A program made the translations under genes and the position numbers. From Octopus sinensis (Eukaryota): a stretch of 64,000 bases of DNA. The notes under the pieces were generated by a model. It made no database searches. It was not told the origin of the DNA and saw nothing but the letters and a program-made list of their open reading frames with translations. This document shows positions 2,948 through 25,884 of this stretch, piece by piece. The DNA lies in contig NC_043007.1 in assembly GCF_006345805.1 (NCBI RefSeq), positions 38,936,001 to 39,000,000 on the forward strand. The letters are read 5' to 3'. Numbering within the stretch: the stretch's first letter is position 1; each line of letters begins with the position of its first letter.

Positions 2948-3084
2948 GTGCCCTGGCATACCATGGTCACAGAGTTAAGATGTATGATAACAATACAGAA
3001 ACACTCAATAAAGCCTACTCCGTCATTGAAGAAGATAAAAACATGCTCCGACAAGAAGGACTGCTGCTACAAAAGAATTTCCTG
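2948..3084 (+). CDS. Gene 1 exon: Rossmann alphaA/beta2 region ([13 protein letters not shown]...)
   Basis: Acceptor tcttctttcag at 2946-2947, donor gtaatt at 3085. GHxVxxxD matches the beta2 strand of 3HCDH_N. Phase 1 in, phase 0 out. Confidence 0.9.
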
Positions 3085-4744
3085 GTAATTAATACTATTA
3101 ATTGTTCATTAATGGGTTTGGCTTTTACCTTCTTTACAAAAAGGTTGTTTTTGTTTCTTTCTGTCTTTTTGTTTAATAAGTTAATTCAGGAAAGAATGGC
3201 CAGATAATGGCCATGGCCTTTGCGGGCCCTCTTAGACAGGACAGGCTGACAATATAACTGCGCAAAAAAATATCAGGGGAACTTACATCATCTTCATCAT
3301 TGTTTTAAGTCTGCTTTTCATGTTAGTATCGGTTGGATTGATTGATACAGTCTGAAATAATTCTTATCTGGAGTTACATCCATTGTAAGTATGTTTGGTG
3401 AACCAGTTGCACTTATATGTTTTATTTCAGCTTGGCATTTAACAGATTGATGTCCTTCCTAATACCAACCACTTTACAGAGCTTTATAGGGTGTACTGAA
3501 TGCATTTTATTGTGGCACCAGCACTAGAGAGGTTGTCATGTTTTCCACAAGACCAGACCAGCTAGTCATCTCATTCATACTGTGCCTCTGCTTGTATACC
3601 AACCACTTTACAAAGCTTTACAGAGTGTACTAAATGCATTTTATTGTGGCACCAGCACTAGAGAGGTTGTCATGTTTTCCACAAGACCAGACCAGCTAGT
3701 CATCTCATTCATACTGTGCCTCCGCTTGTTTACCAACCACTTTACAAAGCTTTACAGAGTATACTAAATGCATTTTATTGTGGCACCAGCACTAGAAAGG
3801 TTGTCATGTTTTCCACAAGACTAACTGATTGTCTCATCCGTATTGTGTCTCTACTTGTTTACCAACTACCTTACAGTGTACTGGGTGCCTTTTATAATGG
3901 CCCCCAGCCAGGGCTGGATTGACACCCATTGAGGCACTAAGCACTTATAAGATTTTGGTACCCCCATAAAAGATTATTTAATTCAAAATATAAACAATAA
4001 CAAACCATGAAATAAATTTTTACTTTTCAAAACTAAACAAAACAGTAAGAGGGAAAATAATGTTTAATTTATATTGAAAAGTTTCCTCCTACTTTTTTGA
4101 ATTGCAAAGTCTTTGATCAGATCCTCACAATTAATCTTAGGTAACACATCTGCAGCTATACTTAGTAGAGATAAAGGCATCCTGAATATTATTTTAGCAA
4201 GCTTAAAGTGATTTCTTTTGTGCCATAAACCATTTACCGTTTCTGTGGTGCCCCTTCCTTCCCTTGATGCCCTAAGCACATACTTATTTTGCTTAATGGC
4301 TAATCCAGTGCTGGCCCCAGCACTAATGTGGTGTCCTTGTTCTCTGCAAGACAAAACGTCCCCAGTGTTCTATATTGTCCCTGTTAGTTCAGAAGAATGT
4401 GACCAATAGGAGAGAGGTTAACTGCAAAAGATGCATTAGCATTCTGCATGTTAAATACAAATATAGTAGGGATTATTTAATGAGTTGAGAAACTTTAATT
4501 AGTTAAGATTATCCATGCAATTAGTAGCAAAAACCTCCCTATAGTATTTAAAGGCTAAAAATAACAAAGGAGAAAAGTCCAATAAAATTACTTAATTGAA
4601 ATTATTGGAAAATATAGAAAACACAGAATGGGAGTAGATCCAGCCTATAACACCTCCTACTGAAAGCAGTGGACATGTTTTAGTCATATTAAACTTCCTC
4701 AGCAAAACATATTCTAATCAGTTGGCAAAACAAATAGTAACCTA

Positions 4745-4775
<31 letters not shown>

Positions 4776-5514
4776 GCCAGTTCAGATTGGAGCCTGGTGC
4801 AGCCATCTGGTTCGCCAGTCCTCAGTAAAATCGTCCAACCCATTCTAGCATGGAAAGTGGATGTTAAATGATGATGATGATGATGATATACACATACATA
4901 CATGGTTATGTGATTAAAAAGCTTGCCTTCCATCCATGTGGTCTTGAGTTCAGTTCCACTGCATGACACCTTGTGCAAGCATCTTCTACTGCAGCCTTGT
5001 GTAAACCAAAGCTTTGTGGTTGAATTTGGCTGACACAAACTGAAAGAAGCTCACCATGCATGTGTATATGTATGTGTGTGTGTGTGCATCTTTGTCTAAA
5101 TATTATTTGGTGATTGTAAATTATACAATGTTGATTGTATTGGCAAGCTGGTAGAAACGTTAGCACGTTGGGCAAAATGCTTAGCAGTATTTTGGCTGTC
5201 TTTATGTTCTGAGTTCAAATTTCACCGAGGTCGACTTTGCCTTTCATCCTTTCGGGGTTGATAAATTAAGTACCAGTTGTGTACTGGGGTCTATCTAGTT
5301 GACTGGCCCGCTCCCCCAAAATTTTGGGTCTTGTTGATTGTGTCCGATCTTCAGTGGAAACCATGCCCTCTCATAGAGAAATATTACTTTGCTTAGAAAC
5401 TAGTGTGGGGTGGTGACAAGAAGGGCATCAAGCTGTAGAAAATCTACTTCAGTAATTTCCATAAAGCATATGAAGCATGGAAAAGTAGATGTTAAATGAT
5501 GATGATGACGATGA

Positions 5515-5548
<34 letters not shown>

Positions 5549-5643
5549 GGTGATGATGATGATGGTGGTGGTGGTGGTGGTGGTGATGATGATGATAATG
5601 ATGATGGTGTTGGTGGTGGTGGTGTTGGTGGTTTTGGTAGTGG

Positions 5644-5685
<42 letters not shown>

Positions 5686-6148
5686 AAATATAGACATCAA
5701 TACTTGGAAGTTTAATATCTAAATTCTTAATCTTTATAATTTTGGCAGCAGGGAGTGCTAAATCCAAATTCTATTACAGACATAGCAGATCTTAGAAAAG
5801 TTTAAAGTGTACATTAATCTAAAAGTTCTGCCGATTCTTCATATCAAAGTGATGATTTATTCTTTCAGGGAACAATATATTACCTAAGTGGCCTCCAAGA
5901 AACAGTCAAAGATGCAGATTTTATATTCGAAGCAATTGTTGATGATCTTGAGATGAAACAAGACTTATTTCAAAGTAAGTACTAGACCAGTCAATACCTG
6001 GCCTAGGTTGACCATTCGTTTTGATTTTAAAAATAACCTCTGAAACTTAAGGGGTGGGTGTTTTCTAACGTGGTCCAAGGCTAACCAGGCCTTTCTGAGT
6101 AGATTTGGTACTTAGAAACTGATATGTGCATACGTGTGTGTGTGTGTG

Positions 6149-6183
<35 letters not shown>

Positions 6184-8354
6184 TAGTTTCCAGATGTTTC
6201 TTCAGGTTGGGTGGTATTGAACCTAATGCTCTGATGACAACAGGGCTAACCTTTATGTTTGACTCTTGTGGCTGCCACATTTTGGCAATCTAAATTTTCA
6301 GGTCTCCATATTTCTCAACCTTTTTCTCTTTCTTTTTCCTTTTTCTCTCTCTCTCTTCCTTCTTCTTCTTCTTCTTCTTCTTCTTCTTCTTCTCTTCTTC
6401 TTCTTCTTCTTCTCCTCCTCCTTCTCCTTCTTCTTCTTCTTCTTCTTCTTCTTCTTCTTCTTCTTGTTTTAATTTTTACTCCATGTATTCCTTATAACTT
6501 AGGTGCTTCACAAATGTGCAAGAATGATGCAGTGATTGCCACAAATTCACTCAAGTTCCACATCTCAGATATTGCCAAGAAATCTTCAAACAAAGAGGTA
6601 AGATGGCTGCAGTAATATCCAAAATATCTGAGGTAAATTATTGCTAGACTTCAACAAAGATTCTCGCAGACATCTTTAGATATGATTAATAAGTCTTATT
6701 CACCTTCCAATAACTTAAAGGTATGCCCCAACACATTTTCCCACCATCTTCTCTCCTTCTCATCTTTCTCTCTTTGCTTTTCTCATTTCTCTCTCCTGTC
6801 TTGTCTCTTTTCCCACAGCGGGGAGCCTTTACAGCCAGATACCTGCTTTGTCACTCTGTCATAGCTTAATGTGCCATCATGTGGCACAAAGTCACCTGTT
6901 CAAAACTGTTCCCCATTCAGTTGAGTGATCTTGTCTTGTGAGTTACTTAGTGACCTTGCTGATGCCGGTGCCATGTAAAATGCACCCGGAACACTCTGTA
7001 GAATGGTTAGCACTGGGAAGAGCATCTAACCAGAGAAACCTTGCCAAAGCAAGTAGTGGAGCTTGGCACAATCCTCTGGTTCACCAGCTCCTGTCAAACC
7101 ATCCAACCCATGCCAACATAAGAAATGGATATTAAATGGTGGTGGTGGTGATGATGATGATCACTAAATGAGCTTCACTATACAAGTGGTGTCATTCGTG
7201 TCCAATCTTCTGTGAAATGATGTTTGACACAAGGCCAAAAATTTGACGGGTGGAGACAAGTTGACTGCATTGACTCCTGTAATTGCCTGGTACTTTATTT
7301 TATTGACCTTGAAAAAATGAAAGCCAAAGTTGACCTCAGCAGGATTTGAACTCTTATAACATAGAGATCCAGGAAAAATGCCACTAAGTATTTTGTCTGA
7401 TGTGCTAATGATTCTGTCAGCTCACTGCCTTCTTTCATATTTTGGCTGAAGGCCAGTAATTTTAGGGGATAGGGGTTAGTTGATTACATTGTACTTGATG
7501 GTACAGTGTAATCACATCATCAACTAATTGATTGATATTTTGGTTTGCTGACCTCGAAAGAATGAACAAAAAAGATGACCCTGACAGAAACTGAAATGTG
7601 ATGACAAAGGGCTGTTACAAATACCATAAGGTATTTTGTTCTGGCTCCTTAAGTTCATATTCTGTTAGGGTCAACTTTGCCCTTCATCCCTCCTGAGTTG
7701 ATAAAATAAAGCACTAGTGAAGAACAACTAACTCTGGCCTTGTGCCTAATGGCGATGATGATGGTGGTGGTGGTGGTGGTGGTGGTGGTGGTGGTGAGGG
7801 GTGGTGGTGGCAGTGGCAATGCTCATAAAGAAAATAACAACAATTATGACTTCTTTTATTTGCCACAGGAACATTAGGCGAAGAGAATATTACATATCTA
7901 TTTATTTATCTCTCTATATATAAACGGCAGTTTGTCTGTATGTGTGTCTGTGTGTCTGTCAGGTTGTACCCTCACCCTGACCACGGCTTTCAACCGATTC
8001 TGATGAAACTTGACACACACATAGCCCAATGTCATAATTCAAAACTAACGCAGCGAAAATTTTGAAAAGTTCCCCCAGTTCTGAAAAGAATCGATAAATT
8101 TGACATGGGGTCGAGAATCTAAGCTTTTTATATGCAACACATTTTCTGTCTAGGGGACACAACTCGACCTTTTTATCGCCCAAAGGAACAGCTAGGAACA
8201 TCGTATACACAGAAGACATTGCAACCTACACATGCGCCTTCGTTCCCTAGAGGGAACGGACTAGATTGGGATTAGTCGTTGCCTACTAGGGGCTCTTACA
8301 TACCTGGGCAACGCCGGGCTATGCTGCTAGTCTACCTATATATCTGTGAATGTA

Positions 8355-8400
<46 letters not shown>

Positions 8401-9819
8401 TGTACACATACATGTCTATAATTGTATATGTGTGAGGGTGGATGTATTTGCTTACTTGTGTATCTATACGCACGCACACATACACACACATCTATATATG
8501 CATACATATATATCATATATGTATATATATATACATTTACATTAATAGTCTTTCAAATATGGCAATGTGGGAATTAAAAAAAGATCTTAATTTAATCAAT
8601 TAAAAAAAATTAAATCAGAATCTTATATGTATAAATGAAGATAATCATTTAATCTGATTTAAAATTAAACTCATCCAAAGAACAACTCATATACATAACT
8701 GACGTTTATTGGAAGACATAAATTGCAATGGAATGTTGACCAGATTAATATGTTCAGTAAATATCAACCTTTTGTTTATGTTTTCACGTATTTCTTTTAC
8801 TTTCTTTCACAGCAAATGATTGGTTTAAGGTTTTTATATCCTGTCTATTATATACCTGAAGTTGAGATCACTCTGAGCCAGCAGACTTCACCCGAAACTA
8901 TTGAAAAAGGTAAGGCCACAACAAGTTTCAGTCACGTTTCTAGCATAATTCTTTCTATTTTCAATAGCAGTCAATTGTTTGCTTCAAGAATGGACGAGGT
9001 ATTTCATTTCTATGCTTGTCACTTAACCTGTTGGTGACGTGTTGACAATGTAGCAATAAAAACTTCTTTGAAAAATAGGAAAAAAAAAATTATAATCTGT
9101 TGTGAATTCGTTACTATATATGTGTGGATAAAACCATATTCCCTCGGCAGTCTTCATTATGACCTCCACCTCTTCCACAACCTATTCCCTTCCCTCCCCT
9201 TCCCCTCCCTCTTTTCCTCCTCCTAGTCCCACCTCACCCCCATTCCACCTCAACTCTGCTTCCACTCTTGCCTCTCTCCCTCCTGCTTTTCCTCTTCATC
9301 CCCCCCCCCCCCGCTTCTCTCCCTCCTCCTTATCATTTCACAAATTTACTTTCCATGTTGGTATGGACTGGATGGGCCATCGAGTGCAAGTCAGTTCTTG
9401 TTTGGAAATACTGCTCGCCTATATGTGTCAGTGACCACATCTTGCTCATTACCTTTTATTTTGGCATGGTTCTATGGTTTCTACAATTGGATGCCCCTCC
9501 TATTAGTAACAATTTTACTAAGCATACTAAGATTTATTTTATCCTAGTACCAACATTGAAGAAGCTGTCATGTCCCCAAGATAAGACTGAACTAAAAGGG
9601 TCCTCTTAACTTTGTGTTGTTTCCACACATTTACCAATTGCCTTTATAGAGTGTACTCCATGTGTTTTATTGTGGCACAGCCCTAGTGAGTTTATCAAGT
9701 ATCAACAAGATAAAAAGCAAATCCACTGCATGGCACCTTGGGCAAGTGTCTTCTACTATAGTCTCGGGCCGACCAAAGTCTTGTGAGTGGATTTGGTAGA
9801 CGGAAACTGAAAGAAGCCC

Positions 9820-9869
<50 letters not shown>

Positions 9870-12826
9870 ATGGAGATGTACTTGCATAGCAAGTGACCTG
9901 ATCTGAGATCGTGTGCTGGAACAAAAACAATTGCAGCATGGAAGGTGTTTATAAGCCATTTAAGAAACACACAAAAACTGTTAGATTCACTTCAGCATTT
10001 AAATTTAATTTGCCAAAATATTTTTGTCGCTTTGAGACCACCACCTGTTCAGATGCAGCATGGAATTTTGTCAGTGAACAGGTCGCGGTCTCAAAGCGAC
10101 GAAAATATTTTGGCAAATTAAATTTAAATGTTGAAGTGAATTTAACGGTTTTTGTGTGTTTCTTAAATGGCTTACAAATACCTTCCATGCTGCAATTGTT
10201 TTTGTTCCAGCACACAATCTCAGATCAGGTCACTTGCTATGTGTATATACAACTGGCTTCTTTCAGTTTCCGTCTACCAAATCCACTCACAAGGCTTTGG
10301 TCACACCGAGGCTATAGTAGAAGATACTTGCCCAAGGTGCCACGCAGTGGGACTGAACCCGGAACCATGTGGTTTGTAAGCAAGCTACTTACCACACAGC
10401 CACTCCTACACCTATACACACACACACATATATATATACATACACACACTCATATATATACATATATATATATAAATATATGAAAGAATGGAGTTGAACG
10501 ACGAATTAACAAAATTCCTTTATTTTCGACATATGTTTCGAAGGCTGCATATTCCTAATTGCAAAGGAATAAGGAGTATATTATGCCGCTTTCTCATCAG
10601 GAAAAGCAAGGAACTTATGTCAACATCAAGATGCACAAAAAACTTTTAGATGACTGCTCACACGGAGCCCATAGTCGAAAATAAAGTAATTTTGTTAATT
10701 CGTCGTTCAACTCCATTCTTTCATATATTTATATTTAAAAAAAAAACATACAAATTTCCACACGAAAGCACGTAACTTCAAACGTGTCTTCTCTACTGTG
10801 AATTTGCTACCCAGGTATCAGTTAACCGAATTATCCATAAAAAGATAATTCATTCAACTACTCAAATATTCATATATATATATATACACTCATATATCTA
10901 TATGCATATGCACATGCACACTTATAAGCACTCATATATATACATACAAATACACACACACACACACATATATATATACATATAAAACATATAGAATGCT
11001 TATAACAAGTTATGTTTTCTTTGCATTTGACAGGAAGAAAGTTCTTGGAGAAAATGGGGAAGACATTATTCTTCAGATCTGGCAATGAACCATTGATTCT
11101 TAAGGAAGAGGAAAAGGAAACGAGAAAACAACGTAATTCATGATTTCAACATTCGAAACTATTGGCTGATTGCCTGATATGTTAGTGTTTTAGATGTAAT
11201 GCCTTTTATGGCATTTAGATATACATATTTCTTACAATGAGTTCATTAAGTTCAAGATCTACTGGTTTTGAGATTGTGTTTCCTCAGTTTGGGAGGTGGG
11301 GTGCTTAAATATGTACTGGTAGACTACTAATGTCAATGAAATTGGTCAATCACCTCACCCATTCAAAGAAGCCTTAAGATGCTGAACCTTATGAAGTAGA
11401 TGACAAGACCAAGCTATTTAGTGCATTACTGTACTTGGAAAGACATGCCCACCACAACAGAATTGAAATCCTAAAACCAGGGTGCCACATAAAATGCATT
11501 GGTGTGGGTGCTAGTGCCAAGTAAAAAGAACTAGTGATGCCACATGAAAAGCACCCAGTACATTCTGTGGTGTGGTTGGTATTCAGAAGGGCATCCAGCT
11601 GTAGCGGCCAAGCTAAAACAGACTATGGAACCTGGTGTGACCTCTGGCCACACCAGTTCCTGTCAAGCCTTCCAAACCATACCAGCATGGAAAATGGATG
11701 TTAAATGATGATGATGATGTTAGTATGTTAGAAATTGTCATCATAAAGGTGGCGAGCTGGCAGAAACATTAGCCTGCCGGGCGAAATGCTTAGTGGTATT
11801 TCGTCTGTTTTTACGTTCTGAGTTCAAATTCCACCAAGGTCGACTTTGCCTTTCATCCTTTTGGGGTTGAGAAATTAAGTAGTAGTTACACACTGGGGTC
11901 GATGTAATCGACTTAATCCCTCTGTCTGTCCTTGTTTGTCTCCTCTATGTCTAGCCCCCTGTGGGCAACAAAGAAATAAGAAATTGTCATCATTATCATC
12001 TTCATTGCCATTATCCTTGCTATTATTTTTCAGCTTTACGTTCTGAGTTCAAATGTTACTGAGGTCAATCTTGCCTTTTATCCGTTCAGGGTCAATAAAT
12101 TAAAATATTAGTCTAGTAGTAGCAGGGTCAGTCTAATTGACTAACATCCTTCTCTGAAGACTGCTGGCCTTATGCATAAAATAAAAACTGGTATCATAGC
12201 AGAATTATTAACATGTCTGACAAAACTGCTTAGCGACATTTCTTCTAGGTCCTTAATTCCTAAGTTCAAATTCTGCTGAGGTCAACTTTGCCTTTCATCT
12301 TTCCAGGGTCAATAAAATAAACTACCAGTCAAGTGCTGGTATTGATAGTAGTGACTAGCCATCTCTTCTCAAAACTGCTGGCCTTGTGCCAAGATTTAAA
12401 ACTATTCTTCTTTGGTCAATAAAATAAATACTTGTTGGGTGATGATGGGAGTTTGATGTAGTTGACTATCCTGTTTCCCTAATCTGTTTGGCCTGGCAGA
12501 ATCATTAGCATGCTAGACAAAATGCTCAACAGCAAGTACCAATCAAGTTCTGGGGTCGATGTAATTGACTTCCCTCTTTCCTGAAAAATTACCGGCCCTG
12601 TGCCAAAATTCAAAACAGAATCGTTAGCATGCTGGACGAAATGCTTAGTGGTATTTTGCCTATCATTATGTTCTGAGTTCAAATTCTGCCAAGGTTGGCT
12701 TTGCCTTTCATCCTTTTGGTGTTGACAGATTTTGTACCAGTGAAACATTGGGGTCGATGTAATCACGTAAACAACAAGTCCCCTCCTCCAAAATTTCAGG
12801 CCTTGGGCTTATAATAGAAAGGATTA

Positions 12827-12872
<46 letters not shown>

Positions 12873-13829
12873 GGAGTGGCTGCATGGTAAGTAGCTTGCT
12901 TACCAACCACATGGTTCCGGGTTCAGTCCTATTGCGTGGCACCTTAGCCGAGTGTCTTCTACTATAGCCTTGGGCTGACCAAAGCCTTGTGAGTGGATTT
13001 GGTAGACGAAAACTGAAAGAAGCCCGTCTTATATATATGTATATATATATGTATGTGTGTGTGTATATATCTGAGTTTGTCCACCTGACATTGCTTGACA
13101 ACTGATGCTGGTGTGTTACATCCCCGTATCTTAGCAGTTCGGCAAAAGAGACCAATAAACTAAGTACTAGGCTTACAAAGAATAAGTCCTGGAGACGATT
13201 TTCTCAACTAAAGGTGGTGCTCCAGCATGGCCACAGTCAAATGACTGAAACAAGTAAAAGAGTATTATTATTATTATTGAGTGAGAGAGCAGTTCATGCC
13301 ATCAAAGTGACACTGGGGTAAAATATACGAAGCCCAATATACCCATCATTACTCATCTGATAAGGGTACACCAGGCACATGCATCACAACCATATGTGCG
13401 CGACATGGTGATCTCATATCAAGGTAAACAGCACATGACCTTGCAGGTGGGGCCCAGTTAGAATTTTCTTCAGGTCGAGTAGCCCATCCCGCTCAAAAGG
13501 TCCCTGAATAAGGGTTGTTTAAGGATGTTGAAAGAACCACCCATGTTTCCAGAGGTGAATTATTCAAACCCCAAAGAATCCCTCTCAACACATGGCTATG
13601 ATGCTCCCCCACTACTTTTGCTTGTGATCAGAGATGCACATATCGTCAGCCACTAAGGGATATGTTGAACTGGTTAAGGTCAAACAACTGACAAGCAAAT
13701 CTGTGGTATTGAGCAGAATATTTGCTGTAGCCCATCTTTTATACCAAGACAAAACAATGTACATGATGACACTTCCAATCAGTTAAGATCAGAAGCCACG
13801 AGAGCCACTGCCTGGTACTGCATCAGGGC

Positions 13830-13879
<50 letters not shown>

Positions 13880-14091
13880 TATTATTAAGGCAGTGAGCTG
13901 GCAGAATCGTTAGCACGCTGGGTGAAATGCTTAGTGGAATTTCGTCTGTCGTTATATTCTGCGTTCAAATTCCATCAAGGCTGACTTTGTCTTTCATCCT
14001 TTTGGGGTCGATAAATTAAGTACCTGTTGCGTATTAGGGATGATCTAATTTTAGCCTCCTCCCCCCAAAATTTCTGACTTTGGTAGAAAGG

Positions 14092-14132
<41 letters not shown>

Positions 14133-15260
14133 CATTATTATTATTATTGCTTTCTTCACAGTTCGTCTAGAACAGATCAAAAATTCATTTGGAATGACAC
14201 ACTTATTTAAGAAAACAGTTCCAAAACTTTCCCATGATGGTAATGAAGCTCCTTCACAAGATGAAGCTGAGGGTAAGGCACTGAAGAAGGGATTTTATTT
14301 ATATATCTATTTATTTTGTTGCCTTTTTTTTTTTTTACTTGTTTCAGTCATTTTTGTGTGGCCATGTTGAGGCATTAGTTTTAATGAATAATAATAATTC
14401 CACACTGCAAAGATCACATCACAGAAGATTGAAGAGCTTTATTGGGAAAAAATTCCTCATCCACCTTATTCTCCCAACCTTGCTCCTTCAGACTACCATT
14501 TGTTTCGTAGTTTACAGAATCAATTGGGGGGGGGGGGACATAACTTTTGACAAGCCAGGAGGAGGTCGAAATTGAGATTTCAGAGTTCTTCGCTTTGAAA
14601 CCAAAAGGGTTTTACATTGATGGGATTAAAAAGCTTGTAAATACATGAAAGGAAGTCATAGATAATCAGGGAAAGTACATTGATGATTAAATTTCAATTA
14701 AATATAACATTTGATCACTTGTTTTCATTATTCAAAATTCAGACAGAACTTATGGAATGACCTGATATTTCATCAAACAAATGGGGATGAAAGGCAAAGT
14801 TGACCTGGGTGGCAGTTAATCTGGGAACCTGAAGGCACATAGCTTAGTGGTTAGTGTATCCAGCTTATGATTGCAAAGTTGAGAGTTCAGTTTCTGGTGT
14901 TGCATTGTGTCTTTGAGCAAGGCTCTTTATTTCACATTGCTCTAGTCCACTCAGCTGGCAAAAATGAGCAGTACCTGTGATTCAAAGGGCCAGCCTTGTT
15001 ATATTCTGTGTCATGCTGAATCCCTCTGAGTACTACATTAAGCTTATGTGTATCTGTGGAGTGCTCAGCCATTTGCATGTTAATTTTATGGATAAACTGT
15101 TTCATTGATTGGATCAGTTTGAGCCCTTGTCATTATAACTGACAGAGCACCATTTTTTTTTTGTTTGTTGGTTAGTTTCTCAACATCCCTAGTGGAAATT
15201 TTGTCCTTTAATTGCAAGGATAATCAAGCTTAATTACAGCTCACTATATTTCATGAGACT

Positions 15261-15310
<50 letters not shown>

Positions 15311-15600
15311 TTCTTTCTCTCTCACACACACATGTAGAAATTTGCTGTAGCTCTGATATAATATTAATCCTTATAACGTTACTGCTGCAAAGCTTTTGAC
15401 AGTTTCTAATCCCTTCCAGCGTTTGACCCCACCTCATTATTAAGTTATTAATCTGAGTATGCTGCATTTAATATTTAGCTGGGCTCTTCTCATGTGAATG
15501 TGTGTGTGTGTGTGTGCAAGTGTGTGCATATTTATAAATGTTTGTATGCATGTATATATATATATATATGCACATATATATTCATATGTACACATGTATA

Positions 15601-15658
<58 letters not shown>

Positions 15659-16891
15659 CACATATGTATATATACATATATACATACATATGTATATGTG
15701 TGTGTCTTTGTGTGTAAATGACACGCATTGTCTTCCAAAGATAGAAATTAAGTCCCTGGCTATATTCTTGGTTACATTTATGTTGAATTGCTCTCAGTAT
15801 TAAAACTGACAGCTACGCCACTTAACTAAAGATGGGATGTATTATATAGCTGCTGTGCACTTGAAGACCTTCTGTCCATCTGAAAACCCAGAGCCTACTA
15901 ATATTGATGCAATAAACCTTACATAGTACCTGGCTATTGATGATTGTAAATGAAGTCTGGATAGGGTGTTTTCCCTTACACCACAGTAGTCCAGCAAACA
16001 ACAGCAATATTCCTGTTCTGCTACATATTTGATAACCTGACCTGTTCTTGATCATTGATAATTGGCTTTGCCGATGCTTTGCTGAATACTCAATTCCCTG
16101 ACAATTGCCTCAATGAGCAAATATGTACAATATGACCTCTCCATGGTTCTTTGAGCCGTTACCAATCTCTGTTCTTCTCTCTTTGTTGTAGCCCATGTTT
16201 CACTACCATATAACATTGCAGGTAGAACTGTGCTATTGATGAGGTTGGCGCAGGTGGTCCTGTTCAACCTTTTCTTGAGCACATCCCTTATGACAATAAA
16301 CGTCTTCCATCCGGCCCTTACTCACATATACATTAATTTCTTATGAGTTATAGAAACAGTATTGGTTCAAAATAGAAATCTGTGTATCATACTTAGAGCA
16401 GATACATTGTTGAAAGCCTGACAAACTGAAATATTTATCTGAAGATAACAACTATTATAGATATATAGTGTTAGAAACTGCAGAAATATATGAGTAGTAG
16501 ATAAAAATTATACAGCAGCTGTTGTGACAGACACTCACACATAACTGTGTGTGTGTGTTGACTCTATAACATCAATGTACAAATGATGAAACATCCTCAG
16601 TGTCGTTATTACCTTTTGTGTTAATGTTCTTATTTTCATTGTTCTCATCAATGTTGTTATCACATGAAATTTAAGGCTCTCTTAAATTTGTTTTCTCCCA
16701 CAGGTATCCCATGCATTAGCAGCGAACAAGACTGTGCCATCTGTATGGCCAACACTCGGGACTGTCTGCTCTGTCCTTGTCATCACATGGTCACTTGTTA
16801 TGTTTGCTCAAACATGCTTCTCAACAAGCAGGATGGATGTCCAATATGTCGAAAAGACATCACAGAAATTGTCAAAGTGTATCATTCATAG
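2948..16891 (+). CDS. Multi-exon gene (5'-partial): 3-hydroxyacyl-CoA dehydrogenase-like NAD-binding domain fused to a C-terminal C3HC4 RING finger; join(2948..3084,5869..5974,6503..6597,8813..8909,11034..11132,14162..14272,16704..16891)
   Basis: Seven GT-AG-bounded exons (833 nt) splice in one frame to 276 aa plus stop: (G)[276 protein letters not shown]. Every junction phase is compatible. Confidence 0.88.
3463..3908. repeat. 134-bp tandem repeat, ~3.3 copies
   Basis: taccaaccactttac starts at 3463, 3597, 3731, with a degenerate fourth start at 3860. Confidence 0.9.
3909..4313 (-). mobile_element. Internally deleted hAT transposon
   Basis: Imperfect TIRs CAGGGCTGGATT / CAGCACTGGATT, 8-bp TSD cccccagc / gccccagc (7/8). 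Minus-strand peptide [33 protein letters not shown] resembles the C-terminal tail of hAT transposases. Confidence 0.85.
5495..5685. repeat. Compound (GAT)/(GGT)/(AGT) microsatellite
   Basis: Directly visible. Confidence 0.95.
5869..5974 (+). CDS. Gene 1 exon: [20 protein letters not shown] motif
   Basis: Acceptor ttattctttcag, donor gtaagt. Matches the family motif D(AC)D(LF)xxEAxxEx(L)xxKxxxF of 3-hydroxyacyl/3-hydroxybutyryl-CoA dehydrogenases. Confidence 0.93.
6355..6465. repeat. (CTT)n microsatellite just upstream of the 6503 acceptor
   Basis: Directly visible. Confidence 0.95.
6503..6597 (+). CDS. Gene 1 exon: [17 protein letters not shown] motif
   Basis: Acceptor ataacttag, donor gtaaga. 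Aligns with the family motif I(FL)ASNTSSLxITxIA. Confidence 0.9.
7909..8330 (+). mobile_element. Non-autonomous Helitron-like element
   Basis: 5' TC(TC)TATATATAAA start after A, gtctgt microsatellite near the 5' end, subterminal GC hairpin cctgggcaacgccggg (8303-8318), 3' CTAG followed by T. Confidence 0.7.
8813..8909 (+). CDS. Gene 1 exon: [17 protein letters not shown] motif
   Basis: Long pyrimidine tract plus cacag acceptor, donor gtaagg. Aligns with GLHFFNPVxxMxLVEV...TSxET. Confidence 0.92.
9885..10241. mobile_element. Foldback/MITE-like palindrome, 167-bp arms with 23-bp spacer
   Basis: 9885-10051 is the near-perfect reverse complement of 10075-10241. Confidence 0.9.
10471..10733. repeat. 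Inverted repeat, 60-bp arms, 143-bp spacer (Penelope-end-like sequence)
   Basis: tataaatatatgaaagaatggagttgaacgacgaattaacaaaatt.ctttattttcgac pairs with 10674-10733. Confidence 0.85.
11034..11132 (+). CDS. Gene 1 exon: end of Rossmann domain (FLEKMGKT) and start of helical linker
   Basis: Acceptor ttgcatttgacag, donor gtaatt. 99 nt, phase 1-1. FxxxxGK matches the end of 3HCDH_N. Confidence 0.85.
12873..13263 (+). mobile_element. tRNA-derived SINE family A (internal TA/TG microsatellite)
   Basis: A-box-like tggctgtgtgg, B box ggttcagtcc, tail aatgactgaaacaagtaaaagag. Other full copies at about 18826, 38308, 44791, 50066, 60956, 62616. Confidence 0.85.
13279..13831. mobile_element. ~550-bp interspersed element flanked on both sides by (ATT)n, copy 1
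   Basis: Colinear and highly similar to 31746-32301, with the same ends (gagtgagagagcag...catcagggcat). Confidence 0.85.
14162..14272 (+). CDS. Gene 1 exon: linker
   Basis: Acceptor gctttcttcacag, donor gtaagg. 111 nt, phase 1-1, open frame joining the flanking exons. Confidence 0.78.
14405..14766 (+). mobile_element. Mariner transposon 3' fragment with right TIR
   Basis: Encodes [28 protein letters not shown] (YSPDLAPSDY motif) ...[12 protein letters not shown]. Ends in aacttatggaatgacctgata, a mariner-type TIR ending in TA. Confidence 0.9.
16100..16325 (-). mobile_element. RTE-clade LINE fragment
   Basis: [16 protein letters not shown]...[34 protein letters not shown], the post-RT region typical of RTE ORFs. 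Confidence 0.85.
16704..16891 (+). CDS. Gene 1 terminal exon: RING-HC (C3HC4) zinc finger
   Basis: Acceptor ttttctccccacag-type tract. C-x2-C-x11-C-x-H-x3-C-x2-C-x10-C-x2-C, then a stop 13 residues later, as in C-terminal RING-HC E3 ligases (MGRN1/Neuralized/Mind-bomb style). Confidence 0.93.
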
Positions 16892-17584
16892 ACATTATTG
16901 CACTAACCATAACACATTATAATCACACATATTTTCATTATATTCAGATATAAAGGAGCAGCAAGCTGGTGGAATCATTAGCATGCCAGACAAAATGCTT
17001 AACAGCATTTCTTTCAAATCTTCATGTTCTGAGTTCAAATTCTGCCAAGGTTGACTTTGACTTTCATCCTTAGAATAAAGTGCCAGCCCAGCACTGGGGT
17101 TGGTGTGATCAACTTGCCCTCTCCCCTCAAAATTTTTAGCCTTGTGCCAAAATTAGAAACAGTTATAAAGGCGGTGAATTGGCAGACTCATTAACAATGC
17201 TGGATAAAATGCTTAAGAGCATTTCATCTGACTTTATGTTCTGAGCTGAAATACTGCCGAGGTCAGCGTTGCTTTTCATTCTTTTGGGGGTCAATAAAAT
17301 TAAGTATCAGTGGAGTACTGGGGTCAGTGTAATTGAGTACTCCACCCCAAAATTTCAGGCCTTGTGCCTATATTGGAAAATATTATATATAAGTATAGCA
17401 GATGAGGTGCAGATGAGGGCAGCTGCATCAAACTCTCATGCACCAAATGTCAATTGCTAAAAAGCATTCGTGAAGTAAAATCATGTAGCAACACCGAATG
17501 GTGGTGCTCCAGCATGGCCACAGCTGAAACTAGATGAAAAATGAAAAAAAAAATGAATTACGTTGCTGTTCTTTTATTTGTAAT

Positions 17585-17905
17585 CTATGGATTACAGTAA
17601 TCTATGGGATTACAACTGGAGGAATTAGGAGCCCAGAAATTGAGGCTGGTGAAGTTGTGGAAATTCTTTGACAGCCACTTCTGACCCTTTCTAGTTGTAT
17701 GGCAAAGAGCTAAATCCTGCTGCCACACATATGGCCTTCAAGCAGCAACCATCTCAAGCCAGGGTATGATGACAGTCTCCAGCAGTTAAACATAGCCATC
17801 TGAATGGAACCTGAGACTGTTCAAAGATGTCAGGGAAGCGTGATGTCAACCTCACTGGAGGCACATCCCAAGACCATCACAATTTGGGGGTACTTGGTGT
17901 TCATG
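17585..17905 (-). mobile_element. Decayed DD37D (maT-type) Tc1/mariner transposase fragment
   Basis: ...RPYVWQQD-(37 aa)-D in LALCHTTRKGQKWLSKNFHNFTSLNFWAPNSSSCNPID; in-frame stops upstream. Confidence 0.85.
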
Positions 17906-18305
17906 ATATGTAGGACACATTTTACTGCCTTTACAATTTTCAGTCAGTATTGTGATATATAGTGTGAATCACCAACATACAGTTGACTCTTTTCTGATAT
18001 TCAGATAGCTTCCTGTCCTCATGTGAGTTAACTATTTTCAACTACAACTTTAACCTTTATGCTGTCAAAAACCATTGGCTGTTCACTAATACATGAAGCT
18101 GTTCCTAATAAAAGGGGACATAAAAGTCATCCAATTTAGCCTGAACATTCTTGCACTCTTATTACAACATTAAGAGATTTTAACTCTTATTTCTAGCAAT
18201 GTAGGTGCTTTGGCACCTCACTCACATTTAATGACATTTAAATTTTTCCTTTATGGTATTATGTTATGCCTAGCTGTTTATATTAATTTTTAGCATATAC
18301 ATACA

Positions 18306-18349
<44 letters not shown>

Positions 18350-19172
18350 TATATGCATACATTTATAAGAAATAAGGCAGGGAGTATTAATAATACTTTC
18401 TCTTGGATAGATTTCTTTCATATGAATGCAAATTCTGAAAAAATACATATGCAGTAATTGTATTGATGCCATTTACCATTTTATTTATTTACATTCCAAT
18501 TTTCTCTGAGGTTCTTCTGCTTTTAATAACTATTTCTGTAAAGAGATTGTAATATGAAATATACTTTGGTATATTTAGGAAATCATATCTCTTTCAAAGT
18601 TTTGAATTTTATATATTGAATGATTTTGCAGTATATTTTTTTATTGCTTCCTGCTGAAAACTCTGGAGAGATGAAACTATCTTTTGAGTCCATTTTTAAA
18701 TATATTTTTATTGTAGTGAAATATTATCTTCAATGTCATTGTAATGCATTGTATTGAGATTTTTCGTTTTGCTACATATAATATAGTTAGCACATGCTTT
18801 GGCAATATTTATATATATTATATAGGCATGGCTGTGTGATAAGCAGCTTGCTTCCCAACGACATAGTTCTAGGTTCAGTCCCACTGCGTGGCACTTTGGG
18901 TAGCTATCTGTCAAAGCATTGTGTATGTATTTGGTAGACAGTAACTGAAAGAAGGCTGTACATATGTATATATGTCTGTTGGTTTTTTGGCCACTACCAG
19001 TTTGACAACTGGTGTTAGTGTATTTATGTTCCTGTAACTTAGCAGTTCAACAAAAGAGACTGATACAATAAGTGACAGGCTTAAAAAAGTAAGTACTGGG
19101 GTTGATTTATTTGACTAAAATTCTTCAGGGCAGTGCCCCAGTATGGCCACACTCAATGACTAAAACAAGAAC

Positions 19173-19216
<44 letters not shown>

Positions 19217-19451
19217 TCATCATTATCATCGTTTAACGTCCGCTTTCCATGCTAGCATGGGTTGGACGATTTTGACTGAGGGCTGGCAAACCAGATGGTT
19301 GCACCAGTCTCCAATCTTGATTTGGCAGAGTTTCCTCAGCTGGATGCCTTCCTAACGCCAACCACTCCGAGAGTATAGTGGGTGCTATATATATATATAA
19401 CAAAGTGAAGTTGTAAGATACCGCACAAGTGGAAATATATATGAAAGAACG

Positions 19452-19758
19452 TTTGAAAATACAATTTTAAAAGGTGTTTGTTCACTATACCGGTTTCACT
19501 TTTTTAGAAAAAGATTGTGAAAAGTAGCATGTAAAAGCTTTGTTGTGTTAAGTACTAGTTGTCACAAAATATTACAATACATATATGCATTCTATTACAA
19601 TACATATATACATATATACATGTATATATGTATTGTAATATTTTGTGACAACTAGTACTTAAGACAACAAAGCTTTTACATTTTACTTATGGCAATCTTT
19701 TTCTAAAAAAGTGATACCGGTCAAGTGAATAAACATCTTTTAAAATTGCATTTTCAAA
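19452..19758. repeat. ~300-bp imperfect palindrome (foldback)
   Basis: tttgaaaatacaatttt...cacaaaatattacaatacatata is mirrored by tatatgtattgtaatattttgtg...aaaattgcattttcaaa. Confidence 0.85.
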
Positions 19759-19876
19759 TCTTCTTTCATATATATATATATATATATATATATTCACACA
19801 CTCACACACACATGTATGTATGTATGTATGTATGTATGTATGTATGTATGTATGTATGTATGTATATGTATATGTA

Positions 19877-19923
<47 letters not shown>

Positions 19924-20111
19924 ATCCAAACAAGAAAGCACAAAAAAACACAACAATGCGAGGATGTGGAACAAATATAGTATTATTGGATGCTCAGGAA
20001 AGAAGGAGGGTTTAATGTTTCGAGCGGAGCTCTTCGGCGGAAACATAGGAGAAGGAAAGATCCAGAGAAGGGAAGACAGAGGAAAAAAATCGCCAACGGT
20101 ACACACGCGGT

Positions 20112-20165
<54 letters not shown>

Positions 20166-20498
20166 CATATATATCAGTAGACAGTAATGTAAAAACATTA
20201 CGGAGGATATATATATATATATTATATCTATATCTATATATATATTATGTAGATAACGTTAAAATCCAAGCTTGTCTTCCTAAAGAACAACTGCTTATTC
20301 TAGTACTCCAAAGTTGTATATTTGTTATATTTGTGTGAGGTATGCATAAAAGTTGAAAATTCTAGAAGATAATTTTTGCAAAGTGATTATGTACCAAAGT
20401 AGGAGATTGGAAAAAAAAAAAACTTTTGGTATCAATTTAATGCACAATATTTTTCCAGTCTTCGTTTTTTGCTGTGCACACACACACACACATGCACA

Positions 20499-20529
<31 letters not shown>

Positions 20530-21140
20530 CATGCATACACACACATGCACACACACACACACATGCACACACACACACACATGCACACACACACATGCAC
20601 ACACACACACACACACACATACACACGTATGTAAACATGTATGAATACATGTATGTATATCTGTATGTATATATGTATATATGTATGTATATATATATGT
20701 ATGTGTGTATATATATATATATATATATGTATGACATATGTGTACTATGTGTTTATTTATTTTGGTAGTGTTGACTTTAAGAGTCCCTCCTAGCATGTGG
20801 CATTTATGTATAGTAATGCCCTCAATATAAATAAATATATTTAAGAGAAAAATTGATGGGCTTATTCTCTTCTGAGGTTTTTCATGCTAACTACTTGATA
20901 AATTCTTATAAAGATTTTATCCTATTTTTAAATTGTATATATGTATGTATTTATATGTATGTTAGTTCAATTTGAAGATTCCACTAGAGTGGATGAAAGC
21001 GCTAATATATGATGTATGATTTATAAAAACATGTAACATACTAATAAATATCTGTAAATATAAAATCATCTGGATTTCTGAGTACCTCATTTCTTCTAAT
21101 ATATATTTATATATATGTATCTCTCTATATATACATATAT

Positions 21141-21187
<47 letters not shown>

Positions 21188-21504
21188 TGTATGTATGTAT
21201 GTATTTATCATATACATAGAGAGATACATACACACACACACAAAACACAGATGCAAAAGCATGCACATATAAGGATACACATCATAGAAGAGCAGAATGG
21301 GCTAAGTGGAACAGGAGCACACACAAAGACAGAAAGTGTCACTGAAAAGGTCACAGATGTGTGACAAAAGATTTGCAGACAGTAGTCATAAGTTGAAATA
21401 AGAACAGTAATAAACAAGTGAAGAATGAATATATAGTGCATGTGTTAAGGTTTGCAAAAAAAAAAAGAAAATCCTGAAATTCAACACTATATATGTGTGT
21501 GCAT

Positions 21505-22260
21505 CAGTGGCGATTCCAGCACTCGGGCTGTTCGGGCTTAGCCTAAGTATAAATTTAGTAAGTGGACATGTATTTGCAAGCTGATTTAATTTCTGCCAAC
21601 ATTGATTTCAAGTGTTTAATCTCAGCCAATTACTTGGGCTCCTTTTACTGAACCTGATTGCATTTATTTTCGATCAGCGTCTCGCATCATCTTAGAGGTG
21701 CCTTGTGTCAAAAAATATCATTTGTAGCGGATGTTCTCTCGACATCATTCACACGCGCCTGACTTAGGCTCAGAAGTTACAGCTCGAGTTGTTATCTATA
21801 AGCATAAAATTTAAAAGTAATTCAAATTCAATGTTTTCTTGGAACAATAAATTTCTATAGAGATTAGGATTTAAATTCCAATCTATGAAAAGTTTCCATT
21901 CTACAGTATTCTCAAAGGAACAAAAGATAATCCAGCAACTCAGGCTAATGCAAACGTGTCCGGTAGGTGTAAAAGACTAACTGGCATCTCTTGTCAAGAG
22001 TACAGGTGACAGTCAGATCTCCAATGTTTGTTGTGCACTATATTATCATTATTTGAGTGCTGTTATTCAGTTGTGTTTTGTAGGGTTACTTTATTTTCAC
22101 CCTTAACTTAGAAATGTAGAAAGACAGTGCTAAATATTAAAAAAAAGCCATTTTGGGCTAGAAATATTGTAGAAAAACATGAAATTCTTTGAGCAGGCAT
22201 GTGCCTTATGCGAAATCTGTGATGAGCCTGAGTGATACTGATGACCTGGAGTCACCTCTG
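21505..22260. mobile_element. Putative non-autonomous hAT-like DNA element
   Basis: Ends CAGTGGCGATTCCAG...CACTCGGGCT and reverse complement CAGAGGTGACTCCAG...CACTCAGGCT. No clean TSD found. Confidence 0.45.
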
Positions 22261-22923
22261 ATGTGTGTGTGTATACATATCATCATCATTATCATTTAAC
22301 GTTCACTTTCCATGCTGGCATGGGTCGGAAGGTTTGACTGAGTGCTGGCAAGCCAGAAGGCTGCACTAGGCTCCAATCTGATCTAGCAAAGTTTCTAGAG
22401 TTGGACACCCTCCCTAATGCCAACCATTCTGAGAGTGTAGTGTGTGCTTTCTATGTGCCACCGGCATGAGGGCCAATCATGTGGTACTGGCATTGACCAA
22501 GCTTGACTGGAGCTTTTTGTGTGCCACTGGCTTAGGAACCAGTCTGTCAGCACAGGCATCGACTATGCTCGAATGGTGCTTTTTATGTGCCACTGGCACA
22601 GGAGCCAGTGAGGCGTCACTGGCAATGAGCTCGCTCAAATGATGTTTTTTATGTGCCACCGGTATGGCTGCACATCAGGCAGTACTCTCATTGGCCACAA
22701 CAGTGACTTCACTTGACTGAACAGGTCTTTGCAAGGGCAATATATTGCCCAGTGATTGAAGGGTACTCTTAAATGGGCCGGTTATGTTGCACTGGCATAG
22801 GCCACGGTTATGGTCTCACTTGGCTTGCTGGATCTTTTCAAGCACAGCATATAGGTCACTTCTCATCGCCTCTGTGAAGTCAAACGCTTGAAGGTTGTGC
22901 TTCACCACCTCATCCTAGATCTT

Positions 22924-22971
<48 letters not shown>

Positions 22972-22988
22972 ATGTATGTATATGTATG

Positions 22989-23031
<43 letters not shown>

Positions 23032-24293
23032 ATATATATATATGTTTGTATATATATATATATATATGTATGTATATGTATATATATCATCTTAATGTCC
23101 AGGCCGAAGCTTGCACTGGACCTCTGTGACTGCTTTGGCAGGATTTTTATAGCTGGATGCCCTTCCTAACACCATCCACTCAGCAATACATGTATGTATG
23201 TGTGTATATATGTATATGTACGTATATATAGGTATGTATGTGTTTGTACATGTTTACACATATACATACACATATACACACACTCACACACATACATACA
23301 CACATATACACACACAAATACACACGAAGGCCTTCTGTATTTGTTTTTCTTTCATAGAATTCCTCTCATAAAGTATTGGTCAACCCAAAAGTTTGGTCAT
23401 GTCTGACCTTGGAAGTATAAAACAAGAACACAGCAGCAACAACAACAATAACATATCCTGTAGCAAAGTGGGATAATTCAGTGTGTAAAATATTCAGAAG
23501 TGAATTTAATAAACCAGTTTTAATGACCTCATGGTCTGGTTTACAATAATGACTTGGAGTAACAAAAACTGGTGTTGTTGCTTGTGGTTAATTTGTTGTT
23601 GTTGCTGTAGTTGTTGCTTATGGTTACTGCTGCTGTTGCTGTTGCTGCTGCTGTTACTGTTGCTGTTGTTGTTGCTGCTGTTGTTGTTGTTGTTGTTGTT
23701 GTTGTAGTTCTGGCTATTGTCAACACTGCCATTGTTGTTTTTTTTGTGTCAGCTACAATTGCTACTGTTGTTATTGTATTTGCTGTTGTATATCCACCAA
23801 GTGTGAAGGCACGTGGCCCAATGGTTAGGCTGTTGCACTCACAATTGCTAGGTTGTGAGTTCAACTCACTGGCTGGGCAGCGCATTGTGTTCTTATGCAA
23901 AACACTTCATTTCATGTTCTTCCAGTCCCCCCTTCTATCATTGGCCTGCTCACTTATCCAACAGGGGTGGCATAACTCGGAGGCTAAAACAATGTAAAAA
24001 CACATAGTAACCAGTGAAGTGTAACAACATTTGATAGCCTGGCCAATCACGTGATATCCAGTGATATCCGATAAGTACCAGTACTATTGTTATTGTCATT
24101 TAGCCCCAGGTCAGCTTGGATCCAGCCATAACCATGCCATATTTTTCTTAAATCAGGACTAGGGCATTCTTCAATGTTTACTGTCTTTATTAAAAAAAAT
24201 TTGTATGGGAATGATTTGAAGAAAATATTATCTGCCATAATGAATGATCAGATAGAGGCTTTCTCAGTGTCTTAATTTTTTTCCTCTGTCATT

Positions 24294-24322
24294 GTGTTAG
24301 TAACTACTACTACTACTACTAT

Positions 24323-24388
<66 letters not shown>

Positions 24389-24452
24389 GCTACTACTACT
24401 GCTACTGCTGCTGCTACTGCTGCTGCTGCTGCTACTACTACTACTACTACTA

Positions 24453-24486
<34 letters not shown>

Positions 24487-24708
24487 GCTACTGCTGCTGC
24501 TACTGCTGCTGCTGTTGTTGTTAAGCAACAAGATGGGTAAGGGTGATTAGGTGATGGTCTAGGGCTTAGGGGCGGGAGACCTCAGACCTTGGAAAAAAAA
24601 AACTTTGGTCATCTTGTAGTTGAGGGTTCTTTGTTGACGCCCGACACCACTGGGAGGTGACCCTAGAAGTCGCTGGAAATGGAGATCTCCAGGTCCAAAT
24701 TCTTGAAT

Positions 24709-24739
<31 letters not shown>

Positions 24740-24743
24740 ACTG

Positions 24744-24798
<55 letters not shown>

Positions 24799-25130
24799 CA
24801 CCTTTGCCACCACCACTACCACCACCACCACCACCACCACCACCACCACTACTACTATCACCATGACCTGTAACACCACTACAACAACAGTATTAACCAT
24901 TGCCACCATACCACTGCTACCACCATCATCATTATTACCACAAACATCACTGCTGCTACTAGTACTACAACTACTACAACTGACACTATCATTAAAGGTA
25001 TTACCACTAACACTTCTAAACCAACTACTACCATCAAGCACTACAAACACTACCAACCCCAACAGCAACACCAACACCAACATCAGCATCACCACTGCCA
25101 CCTACTGTAACATCAACAACAAAAAAGATG
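24294..25130. repeat. Large compound trinucleotide block (TAC/TGC/CAC/AAC) with a non-repetitive core at ~24530-24710
   Basis: Directly visible. Confidence 0.9.
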
Positions 25131-25853
25131 CAGTAAAAAATGATTTATTGAATTTCAGTCACCTCCATCTCTCACTTTCTATCTCTTTTGTACATACACA
25201 CACACACACAGAAAATGATAATGGTGATAATGGTTAGAGATATAGCCAGAGAGAGAAAGGGAGATATGAAGCATTATAAAAATATATACACATACATATA
25301 CATATATATATATATAATATATACATACATGCATAGATACATACATACAAATACATATATAGATATATATATATATATTATATATATATATGTATATATA
25401 TATGTATGTAAGTATGTATGATGTATGTTTGTATGTATGTATGCATGCATGCATGTATGTATGCATGTATGTATGCATGTATGTATGTATGTATGTATGT
25501 ATGTATGTATGTATATATATATATATGTATATTTGCATGCATATAATATATACATACATGCATAGATACATACATACAAATACATATATAGATATATATA
25601 TATATATCATCATCATCATCATCATTCAATGTACATGACACATGCTGGCATGTGTTGGACAAATACACAATCAGATACAGACAGACGACACACACACACA
25701 CACACACACACACATGCATGCATGCATGCACACACACACACACTCACTCTTACATATATACAAATACAAATATATATATATTATTTAAATCTCTCTCTCT
25801 CACTTGTTACTCACACACACACACACACGCACATGCATTTATAAAAATACATA

Positions 25854-25884
<31 letters not shown>

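Follow-up and report, generated by a model that had tools for sequence, protein, structure and literature searches.

What is encoded by a gene that opens like a dehydrogenase and closes like a ubiquitin ligase? The question is raised by a locus of Octopus sinensis in a stretch of 64,000 nucleotides of contig NC_043007.1, 100% identical to CM016869.1 from about 38,936,001 and here called the window, whose DNA is AT-rich, repeat-laden and eukaryotic. Seven coding exons on its plus strand, within positions 2948-16891, join a Rossmann domain of the 3HCDH_N type to a C-terminal C3HC4 RING. A preliminary description of this DNA had proposed a ubiquitin ligase gated by a metabolite. We find that the two domains form one protein of 293 amino acids, whose best explanation would be a cytosolic or nuclear RING E3 ubiquitin ligase with a pseudo-dehydrogenase as its N-terminal 180 residues: the positions that hold a dinucleotide in the related enzymes are conserved, and those that carry out their chemistry are replaced.

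One gene for a Rossmann domain and a RING

The seven exons are compatible in phase, and each lies between an AG acceptor with its polypyrimidine tract and a GT donor. Spliced, they encode 276 amino acids, with a TAG stop at 16889-16891. This product equals residues 18-293 of the O. sinensis RefSeq protein XP_029642294.1, residue for residue. The splice sites are canonical, and the exon coordinates predicted earlier, including the junctions at 11132, 14162 and 16704, are exact. RefSeq labels the protein 'probable 3-hydroxybutyryl-CoA dehydrogenase isoform X1' (CoA, coenzyme A), the kind of automatic annotation that had been anticipated.

The gene does not begin in the window, and here the seven-exon model, correct in what it contained, was incomplete. 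Because the exon at 2948-3084 opens in phase 1 and at profile position 18, strand beta1 and the glycine loop must be encoded by an upstream exon. This eighth exon, coding exon 1 (MKVAVLGCGILGVKIAG), carries the GxGxxG motif and ends in phase 1; it occupies positions 2001-2049 of the fetched O. sinensis locus (L005), about 36 kb upstream of window position 1, and intron 1 measures about 38.9 kb. Neither exon 1 nor the alternative first exons of RefSeq were found in the six frames of the 64-kb window. In total the gene has eight coding exons over an annotated span of 52.9 kb. The RefSeq isoforms in O. sinensis, O. bimaculoides and O. vulgaris differ in the first exon alone, and all end in the RING. 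Alternative first exons (P0001, P0122, P0124 and P0125; one at L005 15133) remove beta1 and GxGxxG, and the isoforms that carry them are either nucleotide-blind forms or annotation noise.

In the 276-residue product, Pfam recognises 3HCDH_N (PF02737) at residues 2-155 (2.5e-33, profile positions 18-173 of 180) and zf-C3HC4_3 (PF13920) at residues 222-269 (5.6e-13), in agreement with the proposed direct passage from the Rossmann domain to a terminal RING. The helical C-terminal domain of 3HCDH enzymes (C-domain; PF00725), earlier thought to be missing, is indeed absent from the octopus protein by Pfam, from all its relatives and from an AlphaFold2 (AF2) model. We also scanned the plus-strand open frames of 11133-26000 for a hidden copy (frames of at least 28 amino acids, very short exons and low-complexity frames excluded): no PF00725 was detected, the RING being the sole match.

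Could the join still be an artefact of the gene model, with a RING exon taken from another gene or an unseen exon supplying a normal C-domain? The preliminary description had named both as routes to its own refutation, and both are closed as far as sequence allows. An unbroken open reading frame (ORF) of 882 nucleotides and 293 amino acids is present in each of four independent Logan contigs (1.9-2.3 kb), which stem from four sequencing runs. It encodes a cuttlefish-like orthologue, 73% identical, that runs from MKVAVIGCG to VKVYHS and the stop codon, with in-frame stops directly before the ATG. Since the gene is spread over tens of kb in the cephalopod lineage, this contiguous ORF is spliced mRNA: the Rossmann-RING protein is expressed as one mRNA in a related cephalopod. 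PF02737 and PF13920 occur together, at about 290 amino acids, in the great majority of 126 clusters, and a small number of the matches, short or truncated, show one of the two domains; the same join stands in about 120 clusters from many phyla. In favour of an artefact we found nothing specific, the general risk of predicted models aside. Given the joined ORFs in contigs of complementary DNA (cDNA) type, the recurrence of the join across phyla, the lack of a C-domain in nearby frames and the RING at the end of all RefSeq isoforms, we reject an artefact of this kind and regard its probability as negligible.

A separate irregularity is seen in the genome model of Acanthosepion pharaonis (P0004), which has a six-residue insert, AAFFLP, before the RING. 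The insert is absent from the cDNA-type contigs of a near-identical protein (P0003; L001-L004) and is probably a mis-called splice site.

A predicted dinucleotide site without its catalytic residues

In the bacterial-type reference enzyme Hbd, NAD+ (nicotinamide adenine dinucleotide) is contacted by the glycine loop, Asp31, Glu90, Lys95, Asn115 and Ser117; the catalytic triad consists of Ser117, His136 and Glu148, within the motif HxFxPxxxMxLxE; and the C-domain forms the dimer and touches the acyl group through Asn186 (PMC11476959). The PDB holds human HADH mutants of S137, E170 and N208, which bears out the importance of those residues. Our comparison set 126 members of the family beside 30 canonical enzymes. 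The two sets were sorted by Arg versus His, which makes the His column circular, and no other.

The dinucleotide residues are kept. G7, G9, G12, E83 and K92 are present in 100% of the 126 members, as is E/D87, followed by D30 in 91% and N112 in 86%. The Glu partner of the catalytic His/Glu pair is also retained, as Glu147, in 61/61 sequences of the alignment and in 121 of the 126 members (96%). Its His is not. At the position of HADH His158 and Hbd His136, all 61 aligned sequences have Arg135, and a count that covers all RING-bearing sequences, and is for this reason not circular, finds His in 0 of 189: one sequence has Gln, one has Trp and the rest have Arg. The position of HADH Ser137, Ser in 30/30 enzymes, is taken by Leu, Met or Ile in 125 of the 126 members and by Val in one. 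Where HADH has Asn208 (Asn in 26 of the 30 enzymes), the family has Glu, Pro, Asp or Gln, mostly Glu, and the hinge PGF(I/V)xNR that opens the C-domain is reduced to EPLIL(S/T)E.

The AF2 model (mean predicted local distance difference test, 87.5) shows a complete eight-stranded N-domain at residues 1-180, a long charged helix at 186-205 placed where the first C-domain helix would begin, a disordered stretch at 206-236 and the RING at 240-293. In Foldseek, about 180 of its residues superpose at 2-3 A (1e-18) on Hbd, HADH and CRYL1, in each case on the N-domain alone, and a PDB sequence match links it to C. elegans HADH (E 6e-19). The region between the domains had been described as a charged helical linker in place of the C-domain; the helix is there, but the linker is not wholly new, as EPLILxE aligns with PGF(I/V)xNR and represents a degenerate C-domain start. 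Arg135, F174 and R176 are invariant in the 61-sequence alignment. A linker motif, [IVL]-P-x-L-x-H-x-G-N (residues 215-222, window 14221-14244), is kept across animal phyla, but not in protist members.

With HADH, Hbd, CRYL1/L-gulonate 3-dehydrogenase and FHMPC dehydrogenase, the family shares the eight-stranded N-terminal Rossmann fold (PF02737), GxGxxG and an Asp that ends beta2, as well as the Glu, Lys and Asn ribose contacts, the Glu of the His/Glu pair and a remnant of the hinge. It departs from them in its identity of about 25%, in the loss of PF00725, in the exchanges of His to Arg, Ser to Leu/Met/Ile and Asn to Glu, in the attached RING and in its phylogeny: in a rough neighbour-joining tree its Rossmann domains group as a single clade, apart from the 30 closest canonical enzymes.

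If the protein were still an oxidoreductase, one that had a non-canonical mechanism or substrate and used the RING for its own regulation or localisation, this would account for the strong 3HCDH_N match, the retention of Glu147 and the NAD ligands, and the names found in databases. Yet 189/189 RING-bearing sequences lack the general acid/base His, a hydrophobic residue has replaced the Ser that spans NAD and substrate, and the Asn has disappeared along with the whole domain that builds the cleft and the dimer. With His, Ser, Asn and C-domain lost, we reject an active enzyme and consider this explanation very unlikely; judged by its sequence, the family appears to fall outside the 3HCDH enzymes on the C-domain, the catalytic His and the Ser/Asn contacts, and an enzyme name seems unwarranted.

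The simplest reading of this pattern would be that evolution did away with the chemistry and the acyl-CoA cleft but preserved the dinucleotide site, over more than half a billion years. The pattern also lends indirect support to the earlier idea that the domain may be a sensor. Acyl-CoA had been put forward, next to NAD(H), as a ligand to be sensed. It now looks less likely than a dinucleotide, since what was lost comprises precisely the residues and the domain by which the real enzymes hold the acyl group; a binding site kept without chemistry or acyl-CoA cleft favours NAD(H) or adenosine diphosphate (ADP)-ribose.

A RING resembling those of the C-terminal, dimer-forming type

The eight zinc ligands of the RING (C242, C245, C257, H259, C263, C266, C277 and C280) are invariant. 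So are, in 61/61 sequences each, I/V244, P278 and L270, at positions where RINGs make hydrophobic contacts with the E2, and R281. An Arg right after the last Cys is known as the 'linchpin', which stabilises the closed conformation of the ubiquitin-charged E2 (E2~Ub); XIAP has a Tyr at this position, unlike the octopus family with its Arg (PMC12326332).

By PDB sequence match, the closest solved RINGs are those of MDM4/MDM2, MUL1, MEX3C, cIAP1/2 and XIAP, all of them C-terminal, and their chains stop where the octopus protein stops. The tail past the last Cys is exactly 13 residues long in 156 of 189 sequences, with an aromatic residue at -3 (Tyr/Phe291; 59/61) and a basic one at -5 (Arg/Lys289; 56/61), as in cIAP1 with Phe616 and Arg614. 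In cIAP1 these two residues pack across the dimer, against the donor ubiquitin that the partner protomer holds, and mutating that aromatic abolishes activity in cIAP1, BIRC7, RNF4 and MDM2-MDMX (PMC6349121). The tail of MUL1, ITRVIPLYNS, is comparable to that of the octopus protein.

In its C3HC4 spacing, its location at the extreme C-terminus and its 13-residue tail, the domain is thus like the RINGs of cIAP1/2, XIAP, BIRC7, MDM2/MDMX, MUL1 and MEX3C. It differs from these E3s in that its N-terminal partner domain is entirely different and its dimer is predicted. At the level of sequence, every feature of a C-terminal RING of the IAP/MDM2/MUL1 type is present. From the linchpin Arg and the cIAP1-like tail we infer an active, homodimeric RING, which would take over from the lost C-domain as the dimer-forming part.

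An ancient family under misleading names

The architecture is real, conserved and visible in public databases. Named members come from molluscs, annelids, a brachiopod, nemerteans, a priapulid, spiders, a sea spider and a millipede; from hemichordates, echinoderms and three Branchiostoma species; from a flatworm and rotifers; and from cnidarians (Nematostella vectensis and a jellyfish included), Oscarella, a calcareous sponge and Trichoplax. The preliminary description had suggested an architecture search across Metazoa; the family reaches beyond animals, since two choanoflagellates have it, and so do the haptophyte Emiliania huxleyi and the green alga Cymbomonas. Of 1.84 billion representatives covered by a profile search, 111 matched at E<=1e-30, many of them divergent full-length members from marine data. 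Conservation is extreme: the octopus protein and those of echinoderms are 50-60% identical.

Among the named matches, and within the sensitivity of a search that is no census, there were no members from vertebrates, tunicates, insects, crustaceans, nematodes, fungi (yeast) or land plants. An amphioxus protein, used as a query for vertebrate and tunicate orthologues, returned Branchiostoma and invertebrates only; a profile built from 30 protist-type members returned mostly bacterial 3HCDH enzymes and almost no new named taxa.

Several members depart from the common layout. One has two Rossmann-RING units in tandem (P0148), a millipede protein has a PX-like N-terminal extension (P0126), two are fused to kinase-lobe-like N-terminal pieces (P0189 and P0215), and that of the rotifer Seison carries a C-terminal extension of 290 amino acids (P0145).

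In databases the family goes by the names 3-hydroxybutyryl-CoA dehydrogenase, L-carnitine dehydrogenase and AIM1-like, and these misleading enzyme names are spreading. Literature searches on the 3HCDH-RING architecture, on these genes and loci, on Rossmann-RING NADH sensors and on pseudo-dehydrogenases brought up no study of the family, in line with the earlier statement that the architecture lacks experimental characterisation. That no vertebrate, insect, nematode, yeast or land-plant member occurs among the named matches would explain this silence.

What the pseudo-dehydrogenase may do for the ligase

In the reading that we favour, the pseudo-dehydrogenase would bind NAD(H), or else a related adenine nucleotide, and would be coupled to a competent, dimeric RING, with the occupancy of the site modulating the output of the ligase; we see the chances of this reading as about evenly balanced. 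The Rossmann domain would bind the dinucleotide without oxidising or reducing 3-hydroxyacyl-CoA. The RING would work as a homodimer like those of IAP, MDM2 and MUL1, the Tyr or Phe in the tail of one protomer supporting E2~Ub on the other. Occupancy of the Rossmann site may then alter the ligase through the docking of helix, linker and RING, through the oligomeric state, or through a substrate surface at the former site of the C-domain, and ubiquitination would track NAD(H) or nucleotide state. The weakest link is the modulation by a ligand, which, taken alone, we consider possible but somewhat doubtful. In its broadest form, an ancient, eukaryote-wide RING ligase would read NAD+/NADH, or free or protein-linked ADP-ribose, via a disabled 3HCDH Rossmann domain and put out ubiquitination; this we consider possible but less likely than not.

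Rossmann dehydrogenase folds have been reused elsewhere to report dinucleotide state, in CtBP, NmrA/HSCARG-NMRAL1 and bacterial Rex. All three come from other superfamilies than the octopus family (D-2-hydroxyacid dehydrogenase, short-chain dehydrogenase/reductase-like and Rex, respectively); their outputs are transcription or protein binding, not a ubiquitin ligase in cis. Closer in concept are RNF146 (Iduna) and the DTC-RING of Deltex, in which a ligand derived from an adenine nucleotide, bound to a neighbouring domain, switches or directs the RING (PMC11269756; PMC7442474). Their domains are of the WWE or DTC fold, their ligand is iso-ADP-ribose or protein ADP-ribose, and they have no sequence relationship to the octopus family; gating is demonstrated for them, and would apply to the octopus family by inference only.

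Four points weigh against the reading that we favour. The AF2 model is that of an apo monomer. The conserved NAD ligands could serve a structural cofactor that is permanently bound and is not sensed. With a hydrophobic residue in place of Ser and Arg in place of His, the nicotinamide subsite may be reshaped or filled, in which case the true ligand could be ADP-ribose, ADP or another molecule. Finally, the isoforms that lack GxGxxG, if real, would make nucleotide binding dispensable for some functions.

By a different explanation, the Rossmann domain, empty or with a structural NAD, is a module for substrate recognition or oligomerisation on a constitutive E3. Nothing would be sensed, and specificity would come from protein contacts on the surface formerly under the C-domain. 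The architecture and the apparently competent RING fit this equally well; the invariant R135, F174 and R176 and the metazoan linker motif could be protein-contact residues, and isoforms without GxGxxG are annotated. The glycine loop, Asp30, Glu83, Glu/Asp87 and Lys92, however, are kept in 126 sequences from algae to animals, which exceeds the usual upkeep of a fold. Enzymes of the 3HCDH family exchange NAD at each turnover, and a structural cofactor, though possible, is uncommon among them. We rate such a scaffold as rather unlikely.

By another explanation, an open Rossmann site would bind ADP-ribose, or CoA/ADP, on modified proteins and so recruit mono- or poly-ADP-ribosylated or CoAlated substrates, much as the WWE domain of RNF146 or the DTC of Deltex does, though these have another fold. 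The contacts to ADP and ribose are kept, and the nicotinamide and substrate side has been remodelled (Ser to Leu/Met/Ile, His to Arg) and uncovered by the loss of the C-domain; ADP-ribose readers placed beside RINGs have precedents (PMC11269756; PMC7442474). Rossmann sites, on the other hand, bury pyrophosphate and ribose deeply, which would make the access of protein-linked ADP-ribose sterically uncertain, and on balance this seems improbable.

Returning to the nucleotide-modulated ligase that we favour: metabolite-switched RING ligases are few and well studied. RNF146 and Deltex respond to ADP-ribose ligands, and none of the RING ligases cited in this comparison reads NAD(H) via a dehydrogenase fold. 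A soluble-looking protein of about 290 amino acids, its binding site kept and its chemistry removed, makes a clean test case for the path from pseudoenzyme to sensor. If the reading is true, a single polypeptide would couple redox or nucleotide state to the turnover of proteins, and this may have been overlooked, as none of the named matches comes from a classical model organism; if gating is real, the way from such a state to proteolysis can be tested directly in marine invertebrates and protists. If it is not, the family is still an unassigned, conserved E3 that needs renaming.

Exon by exon

The domains are distributed over the plus-strand exons as follows, in residues of the 293-residue protein. 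Coding exon 2 (2948-3084, residues 17-62) encodes the end of helix alpha1, beta2 with Asp30 (codon 2986-2988) and a long helix; it is supported by its splice sites, its phase 1 start, tblastn to cephalopod orthologues and the match to XP_029642294.1. Coding exon 3 (5869-5974, residues 63-98) has the FIFEA...K motif with Glu83, Asp87 and Lys92, the counterparts of contacts to the NAD ribose and adenine pocket in Hbd (PMC11476959). Coding exon 4 (6503-6597, residues 98-129) contains the ATNSL segment, with Asn112 kept and Leu114 (6550-6552) at the position of the catalytic Ser of the enzymes. On coding exon 5 (8813-8909, residues 130-162) lie Arg135 (8828-8830), in place of the catalytic His, and the retained Glu147 (8864-8866).

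Coding exon 6 (11034-11132, residues 162-195) supplies beta8 and EPLILKE, which is what remains of PGF(I/V)xNR, and opens the charged helix 186-205, which ends on coding exon 7 (14162-14272, residues 195-232), followed there by the disordered linker with the metazoan motif P215-x-L217-x-H219-x-G-N. Coding exon 8 (16704-16891, residues 232-293 and the stop) encodes the whole C3HC4 RING, from Cys242 (16733-16735) to Cys280 (16847-16849), then the linchpin Arg281 (16850-16852) and the 13-residue tail with Lys289 and Tyr291 (16880-16882).

Surroundings of the gene

Downstream of the gene, an ORF of 135 amino acids (27460-27867, plus strand) has the HTH_48 domain of Mos1/mariner transposases (1.2e-16) and is a transposon remnant. 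An unbroken ORF of 964 amino acids on the minus strand (57976-60870), rich in Ser, Asp and Asn and with no Pfam match, is probably a large coding exon of a neighbouring gene. The last intron contains an antisense ORF (16052-16282, minus strand), again with no Pfam match, which we take to resemble the tail of a reverse transcriptase from a long interspersed nuclear element.

Repeats are found within the introns as well. Intron 1 holds a minisatellite of 11 copies of a 66-bp unit (1448-2171, 83% matches), and the intron after the exon at 2948-3084 holds 2.7 copies of a 134-bp repeat (3462-3821, 96% matches). An element of about 400 bp, similar to a short interspersed nuclear element, occurs in many copies and in both orientations, with 82-94% identity to copies elsewhere in the gene; those at 11668-11978, 12872-13264, 38307-38715, 44785-45193 and 62617-63027 are joined by others, and several of them lie in the introns of the gene.

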